A stretch of 64,000 bases of DNA, taken from the sequence record OQ031493.1. The stretch is one strand, 5' to 3'. The notes beneath the pieces are model-generated. The model worked only from the letters and a program-made list of their open reading frames with translations. It was not told where the DNA came from and ran no database searches. The translations under genes and the position numbers were made by a program. Below are positions 1,459 to 64,000 of this stretch, in pieces (positions within the stretch are counted from its first letter, which is position 1; every line of letters begins with the position of its first letter).

Positions 1459-3018
1459 ATGTTCTGTAAAGAAACCCAAGCTGCGATTGTTGGCTCAGCA
1501 CGTAGTCTAACTGAGGATAACCTTGTTCTAGTTATCCCTAATGAAACATATCCCCTTGCGGTCTTTGCAGATGGTTTCAGTGTAGATGGCAACTCTAATA
1601 AAGTTGCCCTCTCTGAAGAGCTGGAAGCATCTGTAGAAGAGTTCTTCGAGGAAGCTAACCAAGAGCAACCTGTTAGTGTAGAAGAAGAGCAAGAAGCTCT
1701 GATTGCACATGTCTGCTCATCATTACAAAAGATCCAATTCAATACGCAGAATGTTATTTGCCCTGCAATTGAATATATGGTACGTGTTTTTAATGAGCGT
1801 CAAAGCATTAGTTGTCAACCAGATGTAAGCGCTACATTCTACCACTATAATGCAGTTCATAGTGATCCACGCTTAACTGCACACGTTAGTACACGATACA
1901 ATAATTTACAGCCGCTACCTGAGTATCGTACCTTTATTCTAGAATCAATTGATGCTAATGAAATTATTCGGTTAGTGTCAATGGGTAATCCGCATCTAGA
2001 TCAAACTGAAGTTGAAGAATGGCTACTATCTATTCCTAATAGTGCCGCTGTTATTGAAGGTGTGTGGAATTCTATCTTCAATGATGGTCGTCTTCTCATT
2101 CCAGGTGAACTTGAATATGTTGTGGGTAGGTCCTTCCCATTCACTGTTGATTCACTAGCTCTGGCTTACATGATTTGCGGTCACTACATCGATAACCCGG
2201 TTGAAGTTATTGGCGAGAGTGATGTTGACCTAGAAACATGGTCACTAACTATTCGTAAACTACATGAGATGTTTGGATTCTATCTCAAGCGTGCTTATGA
2301 ACGTCGTCAAGCTGATCGTGATGCAGGTCTACTCATCCTAGCCTCAGAAGCTAATAATGTAGTTGCTAATTCTCGTTGCAAAGTAATCATTAATGGTGAT
2401 GTTGCACCTCAATTTGAATTAGCCGGTGGTGACATCCAAGCTATCCTTGGTGCAGCTGTAGCAGGTAGTAATAACATTTACCTAGAACAGATTCTTAATA
2501 ACTCAGAACAGTTTATTCAACGTTGGCTATCAGTATATCCGCTGATTAAACAATCGGCTATGGATAAAGGTTTACGTAAACTACGCAATGACATTCATGA
2601 ATCATTTATGGATGGTGTCATTAATACTGAACTTAAAGATCGCCATGTTAATGAACTCGAATATCGTATTAAAGAAGCAATGAGTACGATGACGACTGAA
2701 GATCTTAAGAATCCTTATATCACCTTTGGTAAACTTATCTGTAAAACATTCTTTACAGAAAATGTTTACTGGCAATATCTGCTAGCAGTTGATGAATTTA
2801 GTCAAATGTATCCTGAGGCCACTCTACGTGAACTCAATACACAATCACTAATTTCACTAATGGCAGCATGGCTGTCTCAACAGATTAAAGTTGAGCGGTT
2901 CACTGGTGTTGTTGATCCTTATGCAAAACTACCAGTAAAAGAAGTTATTGAAACTGTAGAAGATGATAGCACTGAAACTTTAGATGATGTTGAAATCGAA
3001 GAAGAAGTTTCTAATTAA
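1459..3018 (+). CDS. Conserved phiKZ-like virion/head protein (positionally gp177)
   Basis: 519-aa ORF with AAGGAG RBS, acidic N- and C-terminal stretches; lies between vRNAP and protease genes. Confidence 0.7.
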   Translation: MFCKETQAAIVGSARSLTEDNLVLVIPNETYPLAVFADGFSVDGNSNKVALSEELEASVEEFFEEANQEQPVSVEEEQEALIAHVCSSLQKIQFNTQNVICPAIEYMVRVFNERQSISCQPDVSATFYHYNAVHSDPRLTAHVSTRYNNLQPLPEYRTFILESIDANEIIRLVSMGNPHLDQTEVEEWLLSIPNSAAVIEGVWNSIFNDGRLLIPGELEYVVGRSFPFTVDSLALAYMICGHYIDNPVEVIGESDVDLETWSLTIRKLHEMFGFYLKRAYERRQADRDAGLLILASEANNVVANSRCKVIINGDVAPQFELAGGDIQAILGAAVAGSNNIYLEQILNNSEQFIQRWLSVYPLIKQSAMDKGLRKLRNDIHESFMDGVINTELKDRHVNELEYRIKEAMSTMTTEDLKNPYITFGKLICKTFFTENVYWQYLLAVDEFSQMYPEATLRELNTQSLISLMAAWLSQQIKVERFTGVVDPYAKLPVKEVIETVEDDSTETLDDVEIEEEVSN

Positions 3019-3064
3019 ATTATCTTAATGGTTAATAATCATTAAAACATGCAATCGATGATAA

Positions 3065-3092
3065 ACTCCGGTATTTGGAAGGATACCGGAGT
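3065..3092. other. Perfect 10-bp hairpin without U-tract in the intergenic region
   Basis: ACTCCGGTAT-8 nt loop-ATACCGGAGT. Confidence 0.7.
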
Positions 3093-3165
3093 AATACAGC
3101 GAATATTTAAAGGTGCATGATTTTGATTAAGTATTTTAATCTTTACATAAATGAACAATTAGGAC

Positions 3166-16435: not shown

Positions 16436-18004
16436 CTATTCAGTTTCCTTGATTTCACTATCAACTAGTTTCTCAAGTACGGTGATCCAGATCATCACAC
16501 ATTTAAACAGATCATTACTAGCTTCAGTGGTGCCAGTTAGATAAGCCTTACCAACATTGGTTGCTTCTTTATCAGTCATCTGTGCAATGATTTCAGCAGT
16601 TGACTCTTTAGAGATACCGCGAATATTATTTAGATGATTTAGGAGGTTATGAACTGCTTTTAGCTGAGCCATAACAACATTCTTATCAACTAATAGTTCA
16701 ACAGTAATTCCATAGTTGGGTTTACCCGGTGCATCAAGAATGGAGAAGTCTACCGCAGCTTTGTCTTTACCAAAGGTATAAACACGATTACCGGGCACAA
16801 CCGGGCTAGCATATCGGACACCATTAGCATTAATTTTGGTAGCTGTTCCAAACATACCTTTAGCTAAAGCCAGTGCTTTATCATCAGTTGTTTTTCCAGC
16901 TAAGGCTGCTTTAAGAGCACGCAGTCCATTCTTTTCAATGCTGTCAAATAGATTACGGATTACAGTAACCCCCTGAACAGGGTCTACACCAACCCAACTC
17001 TCACCAGTGTCACCTAGAATCAGATCGCGTGGAATTGCGATAGTACGAACTTCATCGGGTAGTTCATTCTCTTTAACGCGTTTCATGATCTTATTAACGC
17101 GTTCTATTTGATTACTGACATTCTGGCGAATACGTTGATAAGTTTCTACAACAATGCGAATTAGCTTCTTAATGAAATCTAATGCAACAGTAGATACTTC
17201 TTTTGCTTTAGCTTGTAGATTATCTAATACTTCAATAGAAGCTTTAGGCCGAGTTAGCGGTGATATAAAGGATTCCATTGATGGCACAGTGTTATTAAAA
17301 TATTTATAGTCAAATGACTCTAGCGCGATGCTAATAGCTTTAGCTAGATCATGATCGACATCATGCCCGCGATGATGGCGGTTACTAACTAAACCAATAT
17401 AGTTTTCTAATGCAGTTTGAACAGATTCTACTTTAGTCAGTTCATTTACAATTGTAAACATTTCAACTGATAATGATTCTAGATGATCATCTAGTTCACC
17501 AGTGATGATATCTTCAGTAGTTTCCAGTAGTGCGGTGGCATCATAGCCATGGTCTAGCTGCTCAGTCTCATTGGCTTCCATAATAGAAATGTCTTCATTC
17601 GATGGGACATCTGCAATTTGGTGTGGTTTTTTGGTACTAACATTAAGATCTTTAGTATCACTTACTTTAGTGATCATTTCATCAGCTGTTTCAGTGATTT
17701 CGTTTTCAACACGATCACCTTTAGCTACTTGGAATTCTTTTAGCCCTTGACTAACATGAATCTTCTTATCATTGATCTTATCAGCAGTTCCATCAACATC
17801 TGGACCTTTGCATACGTCAATTGGGGTATTGGTAACGACATTGGTAACTTCATCACATGGATTTACTTTACCATCTTCATCATCTTTTAATTGTTCTGGT
17901 AATTCTTTACCAACATCAAGATTGACATTCTTATCTTCAGCATCAGAAACGCGCTCAAGACTTGCAAAGAAATCCATTGCGGGAACTGTTTTTTTCTTAG
18001 CCAT
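16436..18004 (-). CDS. gp162: Inner head protein with long acidic propeptide
   Basis: 522 aa; several S/A-x-E sites (ASLE, ALEN, ALES, SMES) typical of gp175 substrates. Confidence 0.75.
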   Translation of the reverse strand: MAKKKTVPAMDFFASLERVSDAEDKNVNLDVGKELPEQLKDDEDGKVNPCDEVTNVVTNTPIDVCKGPDVDGTADKINDKKIHVSQGLKEFQVAKGDRVENEITETADEMITKVSDTKDLNVSTKKPHQIADVPSNEDISIMEANETEQLDHGYDATALLETTEDIITGELDDHLESLSVEMFTIVNELTKVESVQTALENYIGLVSNRHHRGHDVDHDLAKAISIALESFDYKYFNNTVPSMESFISPLTRPKASIEVLDNLQAKAKEVSTVALDFIKKLIRIVVETYQRIRQNVSNQIERVNKIMKRVKENELPDEVRTIAIPRDLILGDTGESWVGVDPVQGVTVIRNLFDSIEKNGLRALKAALAGKTTDDKALALAKGMFGTATKINANGVRYASPVVPGNRVYTFGKDKAAVDFSILDAPGKPNYGITVELLVDKNVVMAQLKAVHNLLNHLNNIRGISKESTAEIIAQMTDKEATNVGKAYLTGTTEASNDLFKCVMIWITVLEKLVDSEIKETE

Positions 18005-36842: not shown

Positions 36843-37376
36843 TTAACTTTCTAGATAACGGATTTGACCATTTTCTAGATAACGTGCTGCACCATTCTCT
36901 AATAGTCGGATAGTATCTGACGTATCATCAATACGTTGGATTAGTATATTACATTCACCATAGTAAGCATAGCTACTCGACATAGCTACTATCGTGTATG
37001 GAACAACATCCGTAGTTGCATTGATTGGTGTTGTATCAAATGAAACATCATCTGGACCAAGCTTCCAACCTCGTGAACGGTTAATTTCTTCAGCAATTGC
37101 TTTAGGTGTTAAAGTACCAACTATCTTAAGGATAGATCCTTCACCAATAGCACGTGGATCAGCAAAATCTAACCGACGGTAAGTTAACATGTACTTAATG
37201 TCAGTAGTGATGTCGATCATTTCAATAAATGTACGTCCAGGCTCAATCGTGGTTGGACTAAAAAACATATCTTCAAATGTAACTGTTTCTGGTTTGAAGT
37301 TTATTTTTAAATCATCCCGCGCAAGTTTTACTAGCGCATTCCTCGATGCCATGTCATACGGAAAGATATCCTGCAT
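36843..37376 (-). CDS. gp143: Virion-type protein with C-terminal triple RxLENG repeat
   Basis: YRRLDF paralog-family domain; ends IRLLENGAARYLENGQIRYLES. Confidence 0.75.
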   Translation of the reverse strand: MQDIFPYDMASRNALVKLARDDLKINFKPETVTFEDMFFSPTTIEPGRTFIEMIDITTDIKYMLTYRRLDFADPRAIGEGSILKIVGTLTPKAIAEEINRSRGWKLGPDDVSFDTTPINATTDVVPYTIVAMSSSYAYYGECNILIQRIDDTSDTIRLLENGAARYLENGQIRYLES

Positions 37377-39163: not shown

Positions 39164-40090
<927 letters not shown>

Positions 40091-60864: not shown

Positions 60865-61947
60865 CTAAACTTTTGGCAAAATTAAATCCATCAGTGAACC
60901 TACAATTTTAATGGATGATACTAGATCAGAGGCAATGGAGTTTAGATCACCCCATTTTAGACCATGAATCAATACAACATCTTTTGGTTTGAATTCTTTA
61001 TCAAACGTGCCAGCTGCTTTTTCCTGGGCTTCCCTTTCCTTAATATCAGCCGCTGTTAAGAGTGCAGTCTTAAGACGTTCAATAACTTTCTTATCTTTAA
61101 TTCCAACCATTGCAGCAGCTTCTTCATGTGTTCTAAAGAAACCATTTTCATGGAACTGTTCAGGAGGTATTACATATCTCTTTTCGCCATTATGACTAAT
61201 ACATCCATGCTTACCACGGATATTAACAATAAGACCAGGATCTAATGATGGATTGTAGATTGACTCAATGGCCATAATTCTGCCAGCCATTACATAAAAC
61301 AATTTATCTGGTTTATTGATGTCAGTATTATACGTTAAAGAATATGTTTCATTCCATACTTGATTAGAAAGTGCTTCTTCTTCTGGACTAAGTCCGCTGT
61401 AACCAGGAGGACTAATATTTCTATTTGGATAAAATTCAAAATACTGACTATACTCAGTTTTAAATACTTGGATACCTAAACTCTGAATCCAACCACCATG
61501 ATACTGATCTACTAGTTTTGATAAGTCAATTGAATACCAAATAGTAATCTCAGATAACTGGTTATTAAACTGATCGAATGTCTGTCGACTAAATGACTGA
61601 ATATATTCTAACATTTCCTCAGGTGTAAAACCTGGAATAGATTTAGCCATAACTTCATAGTTAAAACTATCATCACCACTCCATCGGTAAATGACCTTAA
61701 CTACCAGTCTATTAGACATTACATACTTACGGGATGTCCCAATATTGATAGCGTGACCAGACGAATCAACTACAGTAATACGATGAAATGATTCATTCCG
61801 ATACTCAACAAAACGTGAGACAGGGAGATTCCAATTAGCGTATGGATCACCCTTAGTGTATGCAGTTCCCGATTTCTTATCATACGGGTGATCGATAGTA
61901 GGCTTAACTGATACTTGAGTAAGCCCCGCAATTTTTAGTGTTACCAT
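60865..61947 (-). CDS. Conserved hypothetical protein (gp122 position)
   Basis: 360 aa, AAGG RBS. Confidence 0.7.
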   Translation of the reverse strand: MVTLKIAGLTQVSVKPTIDHPYDKKSGTAYTKGDPYANWNLPVSRFVEYRNESFHRITVVDSSGHAINIGTSRKYVMSNRLVVKVIYRWSGDDSFNYEVMAKSIPGFTPEEMLEYIQSFSRQTFDQFNNQLSEITIWYSIDLSKLVDQYHGGWIQSLGIQVFKTEYSQYFEFYPNRNISPPGYSGLSPEEEALSNQVWNETYSLTYNTDINKPDKLFYVMAGRIMAIESIYNPSLDPGLIVNIRGKHGCISHNGEKRYVIPPEQFHENGFFRTHEEAAAMVGIKDKKVIERLKTALLTAADIKEREAQEKAAGTFDKEFKPKDVVLIHGLKWGDLNSIASDLVSSIKIVGSLMDLILPKV

Positions 61948-62398: not shown

Positions 62399-62433
62399 TG
62401 TAATATAGATCTTAAACTTTTTTTAATGTAATA
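62399..62433 (-). promoter_or_regulatory. phiKZ-type early promoter
   Basis: Minus strand TATTACATTAAAAAAAGTTTAAGATCTATATTACAG; near-identical to 10691-10726. Confidence 0.8.
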
Positions 62434-62434
62434 C

Positions 62435-62470
62435 AACATAAAGCCCTCCCCGAAGGGAGGGCCTATGTCT
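62435..62470 (-). terminator. GCCCTCCC-family hairpin closing the capsid transcript
   Basis: AACATAAAGCCCTCCC-CGAA-GGGAGGGCCTATGTC; begins 4 nt after the TAG at 62475. Confidence 0.8.
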
Positions 62471-62474
62471 GTTA

Positions 62475-62552
62475 CTATTCTAACTTCCGGGCATTACCGT
62501 CTTCCAAATAACGGATAGTCCCATTTTCTAGATAACGGTAACCCTTTCCAGC
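62475..62552 (-). CDS. Putative readthrough extension of the major capsid protein (25 aa)
   Basis: In frame after TGA: AGKGYRYLENGTIRYLEDGNARKLE-TAG; same repeat as the gp143 C-terminus. Confidence 0.6.
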   Translation of the reverse strand, partial: AGKGYRYLENGTIRYLEDGNARKLE

Positions 62553-64000
62553 TCACGGCTTAAGATCAGCAAGCTTACCGTTGAACTGAGTTTCACCCAT
62601 GACTTTCTGGAAGCCAGTGATCTTGAACTCTAGCGCGAACGGAATGTTGTTGACGTGTAGGTTGAACGGAATGGCCGCGATTTCGCGAGTAACCTGGTGA
62701 CCACCACGAGTGATCGGTAGGTCAGCGATAACAGTAGATACGTAGAAGAACTGACCCCAGGAGAGGATGTCGTTTTCTTGTTGTACTGCGCGGGTCGGAA
62801 TTACAACTAGCTTACCATCAAATAGCTGGTTGTTGGTGGAAACGATATCGTACTTGAGATAAGCACCTAGAGTACGGTCGTCACCTTTAGTCATTAGATA
62901 GTTAGCAATCTCTTTGTCGGAGCAGAAGAGATACATCGGAGTTTCATCCTGGTTACCGGAGATAACACGGAAGGCAGCTTCAATGTTGGAATCACGGTGA
63001 GCCGGGAATAGCTCAGCTTTAACACAGTTTAGGATCGCAGCGCAAACGTCGTCCCAACGATCTTTAGACTTGATGGTGTCGATGACTTTCTCAAGATCTA
63101 GTTCTTTGTAACGATAGGTCGGACGCATTACAGCGGATAGTGCACCTTCGATGATACCAAACTTCGGACGGTTGTAACCATTGTGTACAACTTCACGTAG
63201 TTGAGCAAGGTAGTTAAGCATGCGCTTAACAGCGTTGTTGCTGTTACGGATGTTGGTGTTAACAGTTAGAGCTTTAACAACCTCACCCGGACCTTCATCG
63301 GTCATGGTGTCCATCGGTAGAGTTACAGGAGCGTGCATCGGGATCGGATGACGGAACTGTAGCGCACGGGTCTGTAGTAGGTGACCACGCTGACGACGGT
63401 TAGTGTTGGTGAAGCGAGTGTCTAGTTCGAAACCGATAACCGCTAGGTCAGTTAGCTGATCTAGAATAGCTTTAACAGCCGGGTCAGCATTATCCATTAC
63501 CTGACCATCTTCGTTTAGAACTTTATCGACGTAAGTGTCGGTAGCACCAAACTTAGAATCGCCTTTGGATAGGCTGATTGTACCACCAAAACCAACGCTT
63601 AGACGTAGGCTTAGTTTAGCAGTCTTAAGGTCGTTAATAACGCCATCAGCTGAACCGTCGATGAAAGTGGTATCGCCACTAACAACAAGGTCATCGCTAT
63701 CGAAACGGATAACTGCGTTCCGGGTATCACCAACTAGATCGGGCTGGAACACAGCGCGAGGTAGACGGTCAACCTTGAACTTAACAACTTTACCGCCGAG
63801 TAGAACGAATAGGTTCTTTAGACGACCAGCCGGATCAATGGTGTCAGAAACTTCAAGCATGCCACGCTGAATGAGTAGGTTAGCATTGGAGTTACCCATT
63901 AGATCAAGACGTACGTTCGCTTTTAGCGGAGCAGTAGTGATAGTTAGGTTCTGCTCGTTCTTGATGGTGTACGGAGGAACAAGAGCCGGGTCTACGAAGA
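62553..64000 (-). CDS. gp120: Major capsid protein (3' part; frame open to the window end)
   Basis: Strong high-expression codon bias (AAC, TTC, ATC, CTA); position upstream of gp121-123; the track's Met at 63899 is internal. Confidence 0.88.
   Translation of the reverse strand, partial: FVDPALVPPYTIKNEQNLTITTAPLKANVRLDLMGNSNANLLIQRGMLEVSDTIDPAGRLKNLFVLLGGKVVKFKVDRLPRAVFQPDLVGDTRNAVIRFDSDDLVVSGDTTFIDGSADGVINDLKTAKLSLRLSVGFGGTISLSKGDSKFGATDTYVDKVLNEDGQVMDNADPAVKAILDQLTDLAVIGFELDTRFTNTNRRQRGHLLQTRALQFRHPIPMHAPVTLPMDTMTDEGPGEVVKALTVNTNIRNSNNAVKRMLNYLAQLREVVHNGYNRPKFGIIEGALSAVMRPTYRYKELDLEKVIDTIKSKDRWDDVCAAILNCVKAELFPAHRDSNIEAAFRVISGNQDETPMYLFCSDKEIANYLMTKGDDRTLGAYLKYDIVSTNNQLFDGKLVVIPTRAVQQENDILSWGQFFYVSTVIADLPITRGGHQVTREIAAIPFNLHVNNIPFALEFKITGFQKVMGETQFNGKLADLKP

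Follow-up and report, generated by a model that had tools for sequence, protein, structure and literature searches.

Extension of a coat protein by stop-codon readthrough is known from RNA phages, and tailed phages use frameshifting for the same purpose. In Qbeta, the A1 protein arises by UGA readthrough of the coat gene at a level of ~5% (PMC7026636). Frameshift-extended capsid proteins have been described in T3, T7, A2, A118 and PSA, some of them with immunoglobulin-like (Ig-like) domains (PMC5009743). The locus analysed here is the 3' end of the gene for the major capsid protein gp120 in a phiKZ-type phage, contained in a stretch of 64,000 nucleotides (nt) from record OQ031493.1 (64 kb, referred to as the window). 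It would resemble Qbeta A1 in that a UGA ends the major coat gene and an in-frame extension gives a minor, C-terminally extended subunit from the same mRNA, and it would share with phages of the T7 10A/10B type a minor C-extended capsid isoform in a tailed phage.

phiKZ is the model nucleus-forming jumbo phage, whose capsid has been solved at 3.5 Å and whose virion proteome has been studied repeatedly. The reading favoured here is that the TGA ending its gp120 gene is a programmed leaky stop, so that a minority of capsid subunits would be extended with a short repeat tag, and the sequence comparisons described below lead us to put its probability at about 0.78. An initial annotation, made from the window alone, had proposed such programmed UGA readthrough, adding a tag of the type that ends another phiKZ protein, gp143, and this proposal is strongly supported by the comparative sequence evidence.

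The capsid gene terminus and its in-frame extension

Over the 601 bases around the site, identity is 100% to Pseudomonas phage PA7 and 99.2% to phiKZ, and 47 phiKZ-type records match. The part of gp120 encoded in the window matches Pfam PhiKZ_MCP (PF25620; E 3e-169, 564.5 bits against a cut-off of 27), a profile that stops short of the TGA and leaves the extension outside, and is identical across 481 residues to residues 267-747 of the gp120 chain in PDB entry 8y6v, 747 being the last residue. Past the TGA, the same frame continues on the minus strand for 25 sense codons (62552-62478) to a TAG at 62477-62475, the layout and coordinates that had been described initially (Table 1). Three copies of an 8-residue repeat had been read in this tail; two of them are full units and the third is only a shortened R-x-L-E. 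The terminator hairpin does follow the second stop, as claimed, although its stem begins 10 nt past the TAG and 88 nt past the TGA and not at the 4 and ~82 nt given before. The choice of TGA had been considered unusual, and in the 60 non-overlapping open reading frames (ORFs) of the window it is indeed a minority stop (TAA 42, TGA 11, TAG 7), yet it is not rare. At 38% GC, 25 open codons are not significant in the window alone (~0.18 by composition), and the significance of the open extension comes from the relatives. Pfam gave no domain match in the window extension, the Ig-like Big_2 domain included. In a PA7-type copy (L013, 2353-2436), the TAG is replaced by a sense codon and the adjoining TAA terminates, adding one residue, which indicates that the double stop serves as a backup.

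Table 1. Features of the window bearing on the capsid extension and the shared repeat module
Feature	Position	Strand	Basis or remark
gp143, 177 aa, virion-associated protein and lysis regulator	36843..37376	-	phrog_2935, E 5e-46; PMC12894885
gp143 C-terminal three-repeat module	36846..36908	-	repeat match, homologue alignment
Intrinsic terminator hairpin, 10-pair stem	62441..62464	-	T-rich tail with TATG at 62431-62440
Double stop TAG-TAA closing the extension	62472..62477	-	TAA directly after TAG
Repeat module of the capsid extension	62478..62537	-	two 8-residue R-x-L-E-[ND]-G-x-x units and terminal R-x-L-E
First 5 extension codons, Gly/Lys-rich linker	62538..62552	-	G-K-G here; N-P-G in other genera
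gp120 TGA stop, proposed leaky (readthrough) stop	62553..62555	-	next base G
gp120 major capsid protein gene, 3' part	62556..64000	-	last 481 sense codons; remainder past the window end

Capsid-gene 3' ends were gathered from annotated phage records, IMG/VR contigs and metagenome contigs, giving 59 loci, 45 of them distinct. Searched alone with tblastn, the 25-residue piece matches exactly two places per phiKZ-type genome, and also the DNA just past the capsid stop in PhiPA3-type and other Pseudomonas jumbo phages. At 28 of the 45 distinct loci, the frame stays open for 24-30 codons past a TGA and encodes R-x-x-E-[DNSG]-G, before a second stop and then the terminator. These extension loci span at least nine named genera plus metagenomic contigs (the named phages being phiKZ, PhiPA3, PS119XW, Phabio, 201phi2-1, Viktualia, RVTF4, D6, Psa21 and Noxifer), with capsid identity to the window down to 53%. 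The first stop is TGA in all 28, and the second is free to vary (TAA 16, TAG 5 and TGA 5 in the 26 distinct extensions analysed). Another 15 of the 45 have TAA, just 1-15 further codons, no motif and a terminator near; more distant relatives (Ea35-70, RSL2, a Vibrio phage, Eowyn) mostly have TAA with short tails too. At least four TAA loci (L064, L039, L072, L034) cluster beside extension-bearing lineages, indicating that loss of the extension and the switch from TGA to TAA have been coupled repeatedly. None of the collected capsid loci has a sense codon at the TGA position, which would have pointed to a strain-specific nonsense change. The hairpin lies at a median of 11 nt past the second stop at extension loci, against 34 nt past the TAA at extension-less ones; from these distances, the terminator appears to track the second stop, not the first.

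The extension bears the signature of a coding sequence. None of the 26 distinct extensions analysed has a stop in frame 0, whereas the +1 frame is free of stops in 2 and the +2 frame in 4, and the differences in length are all frame-preserving. The two invariant Arg columns jointly use CGT, CGA, CGC, CGG, AGA and AGG; all four codons occur in the invariant Gly columns and both codons for the invariant Glu, and entropy at third positions is 1.32 bits, compared with 0.95 and 0.91 at positions 1 and 2. Alignment of the capsid 3' region across relatives, which had been suggested as a check on readthrough, revealed conservation of both stop and extension, with a ratio of nonsynonymous to synonymous differences (pN/pS) of 0.52 over 13 disjoint nearest pairs (binomial p = 3e-7 for the synonymous excess) and neither frameshifts nor stops in the extensions. 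By these measures, the extension is conserved as protein-coding sequence.

These data bear on the idea that the stretch is an untranslated relic of a once longer capsid protein, left behind by a nonsense change that was fixed in the ancestor of the clade. The shortness of the tail would fit this idea, as would the longer C-terminal modules present in the family, exemplified by the relative L035 (see below). A dead tail would nevertheless be expected to gain stops and frameshifts at the synonymous divergence observed (pS 0.4-0.64), yet 26 of 26 are open with the motif kept; moreover, as long as the extension persists, the TGA does not drift to TAA or TAG, and TAA appears where the extension is lost. 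A relic is, on this evidence, extremely unlikely.

The stretch might also be conserved as an RNA or DNA element (part of a terminator or attenuator, or a binding site) that merely resembles a reading frame. Its position just upstream of the terminator would suit such an element, and many copies are predicted to form local hairpins (mean z = -1.7 relative to mononucleotide shuffles), with a small CC-G...CGG pairing that recurs. This pairing, however, can be a by-product of the Arg (CGU) and Asp-Gly (GAC GG) codons; the RNAalifold consensus fold is negligible (-0.5 kcal/mol, 4 pairs, compensatory change essentially nil), and Rfam gave no match at threshold over the extension. What is conserved is the amino-acid sequence, with synonymous turnover that includes CGN to AGG for Arg; frame 0 alone stays open, the motif forms the C-terminal end of a genuine protein family (gp143), and a recognisable protein domain is encoded at the same place in L035. 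An element acting as nucleic acid is thus distinctly unlikely.

L035 (2380-2670) is a metagenomic relative whose capsid gene closes with a Pro/Glu-rich linker and a TAA, after which come 95 in-frame codons. This post-stop frame contains a Pfam Big_2 Ig-like domain (30.1 bits, threshold 22.8) that begins with the second codon past the stop; after it come the repeat of the capsid tag and the terminator. An HNH-like ORF lies further downstream (2739-3137).

Several other arrangements were seen past capsid stops. In two extension-less loci (L042 and L071), a short stretch like the last repeat unit (R-L-R-L-E) stands 8 codons past the capsid TAA, and may be a vestige of a deleted extension. RP12 (L054) and FLC9 (L060) have a capsid TGA with A as the next base, and then 15-18 open codons. 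Goslar-type Escherichia coli jumbo phages (L012:1133-1222; L050-L052) also have a capsid TGA followed by A, with 28 open codons and a terminator; their extension is acidic and unrelated in sequence to the repeat tag, and 3 of 3 substitutions among three contigs are synonymous. This extension and the L035 locus count as two independent hints of translation past the capsid stop. Within the window, the minus-strand ORFs at 60865-61947 and 16436-18004 terminate at TAG, past which the same frame is open for 546 and 398 codons, respectively, probably as the next gene in each case. Right after the stem of the capsid terminator, TATG and then (C/T)CGT are found in nearly every relative (L001, L012, L055 and L059 included), and are kept even in distant genera such as those of Goslar, Eowyn and Ea35-70. 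TATG is presumably the late-promoter start motif of the phage non-virion RNA polymerase; if so, the capsid terminator and the TATG would form a fused terminator-promoter unit.

Proposed decoding of the UGA and predicted place in the capsid

TGA is the leakiest stop codon. The base after it is A in 18, G in 7, C in 1 and T in none of the 26 distinct extensions, a pattern compatible with weak termination contexts in bacteria. Because the extension lies in the zero frame directly past the stop (the other frames being closed at 22-24 of 26 loci), the mechanism would be readthrough and not frameshifting.

Alternatively, the tail could be made as a separate small peptide by its own initiation, or the UGA could be read by a dedicated tRNA, either a phage suppressor or a selenocysteine tRNA acting through a selenocysteine insertion sequence (SECIS). 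In favour of these options, UGA doubles as the codon for selenocysteine, tRNA genes are present in jumbo phages, and the sequence past the TGA can be drawn as hairpins. It had been noticed in the window that no start codon serves the extension, and this holds for the relatives: an in-frame ATG, GTG or TTG is present in the first 8 codons of 0 of 28 extensions, leaving independent initiation without a start codon there. Seven tRNAs are annotated in phiKZ, for Thr, Asn (two), Asp, Met, Pro and Leu (anticodons tgt, gtt, gtt, gtc, cat, tgg and taa), and they include no suppressor, no TCA anticodon and no Trp tRNA, a result that comes from ARAGORN on the 45 kb tRNA region and, elsewhere, from the RefSeq numbering t01-t07. 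As for selenocysteine, Rfam gave no SECIS-type hit over the extension, and no hairpin is conserved at a fixed distance past the TGA. Both own initiation and a dedicated tRNA are therefore very unlikely and, since a stimulator, a SECIS and a suppressor tRNA are all missing from these searches, the simplest mechanism would be near-cognate decoding of the UGA by a host tRNA, as in Qbeta.

With a programmed leaky stop, most ribosomes would terminate at the TGA and release the 747-residue gp120, and a minority would insert an amino acid at the UGA by means of a near-cognate tRNA of the host (most likely tRNA-Trp) and run through 25 more in-frame codons to the TAG-TAA just before the terminator. The product would be gp120 followed by a short Gly-rich linker and a ~20-residue module of three R-x-x-E-[DN]-G-type units, which may fold as a small beta-meander with N-G and D-G turns. 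In the 3.5 Å capsid structure, gp120 residues 728-747 constitute the C-terminal arm, and six of these arms form a helix bundle with a ~9 Å pore at each hexamer centre, while at pentons the arms touch the outer protein gp244 (PMC11297242). Since the C-terminal arms meet at the hexamer centre, the extension would emerge at capsomer centres, where the tag would be carried by a few to a few tens of the ~1600 subunits per head.

Several observations weigh against a programmed leaky stop. phiKZ itself has G, not A, after the TGA, and the small residue (Pro, Ala or Gly) before the stop is common in TAA-ended relatives too, so it is no specific signal. A conserved RNA stimulator was not found by RNAalifold. 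The association between TGA and extension (Fisher p = 7e-10) is not corrected for phylogeny, nor are the other comparisons. Constraint outside the motif is modest, as the pN/pS of the extension compares with 0.33 in the last 60 capsid codons. In L035 the stop before the extension is TAA and not TGA, possibly a recent nonsense change or an assembly variant. No published peptide, footprint or band for the gp120 extension was found in the literature, and the 3.5 Å model stops at residue 747, with no mention of extra density at hexamer centres in the text searched (PMC11297242); a low-occupancy tag would be averaged out in icosahedral maps.

We infer from the conserved stop, frame and motif that the extension is translated; the frequency of readthrough, the inserted residue and the fold, location and function of the product are likewise inferred. 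On this comparative evidence, the phiKZ capsid TGA is a well-supported, apparently undescribed candidate recoding site: in agreement with the initial annotation, which knew of no earlier description in phiKZ-like phages, full-text literature searches on readthrough in phiKZ or jumbo phages, and on readthrough of phage capsid genes, gave nothing relevant.

The repeat module in gp143 and beyond

In the six-frame translation of the window, R-x-L-E-[ND]-G occurs only in the capsid extension and at the end of gp143, twice in each. As reported initially, the DNA of the two tags matches at 30 of 36 nt; the match is in codon register, and its score was reached by only 2 of 2000 random window segments. 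Every gp143 homologue examined ends in the same three-repeat module (R157, E160, R165, E168 and R173 are invariant in 44 homologues), and the phages that have gp143 homologues are the same as those with the capsid extension. Like the capsid tag, the gp143 tail is built from three units of 8 residues in which Arg, Glu and Gly keep their positions, and it stands at the extreme C-terminus; unlike the capsid protein, gp143 has a ~155-residue globular body before it, and its tail ends in R-E-L-E-H, where the capsid tails end otherwise. Within-genome co-variation of the two tags was negative (permutation p = 0.75), and gene conversion or lineage-specific co-evolution between them was dropped on the basis of this test.

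The AlphaFold2 model of gp143 has a mean predicted local distance difference test (pLDDT) score of 89.9, with pLDDT 74-85 in the tail and a beta-bridge pattern each 8 residues. This bridge pattern, together with the N-G and D-G turn-formers, suggests that the module folds as a small three-stranded beta-meander. Neither Pfam nor PHROGs contains a family for it, and a word-indexed protein search with the gp143 tail only returned gp143 itself and nothing else. All-against-all HMMER comparison with gp143 retrieved mostly orthologues plus a metagenomic protein, P0074. This protein (JGI sample 3300047160, on a 1.2 kb contig) has 239 residues and contains four modules of three R-L-L-E-x-G-x-x units, with Gly/Pro linkers between them; its single-sequence fold is unusable (pLDDT 42). 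The module exists, then, outside the capsid and gp143 contexts, and the four triple modules split by Gly/Pro linkers suggest that it is an autonomous unit.

According to a recent description, gp143 is a cytoplasmic regulator that works through the N-terminal domain of gp142, the holin (PMC12894885). Transposon mutagenesis classes it as non-essential; the insertions are tabulated there per gene and carry no information on the 75-nt capsid extension. Its RefSeq label is virion structural protein, and its homologue in 201phi2-1 (gp228) was detected in virions by mass spectrometry. gp143 is not mentioned in the text of the cryo-electron microscopy virion atlas. The gp143 model resembles a 150-residue chain of the outer peripheral region of the phiKZ baseplate (9xqd_0; Foldseek E 7e-7, 18% identity), and the protein weakly matches DUF7941 and phrog_1037; its origin may lie in a baseplate protein. 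Entry 9xqd also contains gp139, the gene for which lies 2 kb from that of gp143 (window 39164-40060).

The initial annotation had suggested that the extended gp120 docks the same partner as gp143, perhaps fibres. A common partner may exist, but nothing found here supports it, and there is no sign that fibres are involved. A further, speculative reading makes the three-repeat tag a self-associating or common-partner docking handle, present on readthrough capsid subunits and on gp143, that would tether or titrate gp143 on assembling capsids; we consider it unlikely. If it were true, it would explain why mass spectrometry detects gp143 in virions although symmetric maps do not show it, and lysis timing would be coupled to capsid production. 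On this unlikely reading, nucleus-forming jumbo phages more broadly would display sub-stoichiometric modules at capsomer centres via capsid-gene readthrough, these modules being the repeat tag, the Ig-like domain and the Goslar-type acidic tail.

Significance and comparison with known recoding systems

If the extended protein is made, the most abundant protein of phiKZ would have a conserved second isoform that is missing from every current model. In addition, the tag is a new small protein module for which Pfam has no entry, and through it the capsid is linked to gp143, a protein only recently implicated in lysis control; an annotation rule is obtained for the clade: a capsid gene ending in TGA with a terminator ~95 nt away. 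To our knowledge, gp120 would be the first capsid protein of a tailed double-stranded DNA phage to be extended by programmed stop-codon readthrough.

The proposed gp120 extension differs from its closest counterparts in several respects. Qbeta is a single-stranded RNA levivirus in which the extension is a whole domain needed for infectivity, whereas in phiKZ, a double-stranded DNA jumbo myovirus of 280 kb whose capsid protein has the HK97 fold, the predicted tag is ~25 residues long. No homology was found between gp120 and levivirus coat or A1 proteins, PDB and Pfam searches giving phiKZ-type and other jumbo-phage capsid proteins only. The phages of the T7 10B type reach their minor isoform by -1 or +1 frameshifting at slippery sites, in contrast to the zero-frame readthrough proposed for gp120, and the Big_2 domain of L035 fits the tradition of Ig-bearing frameshift-extended capsid proteins. 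Proteins of the T4 Hoc type resemble the gp120 tag in their position at the capsomer centre, predicted for the tag, and in having an Ig-like module, found in one relative of gp120; Hoc, however, is a separate gene product that binds after assembly, whereas the tag would be fused to a sub-stoichiometric share of the capsid protein itself.

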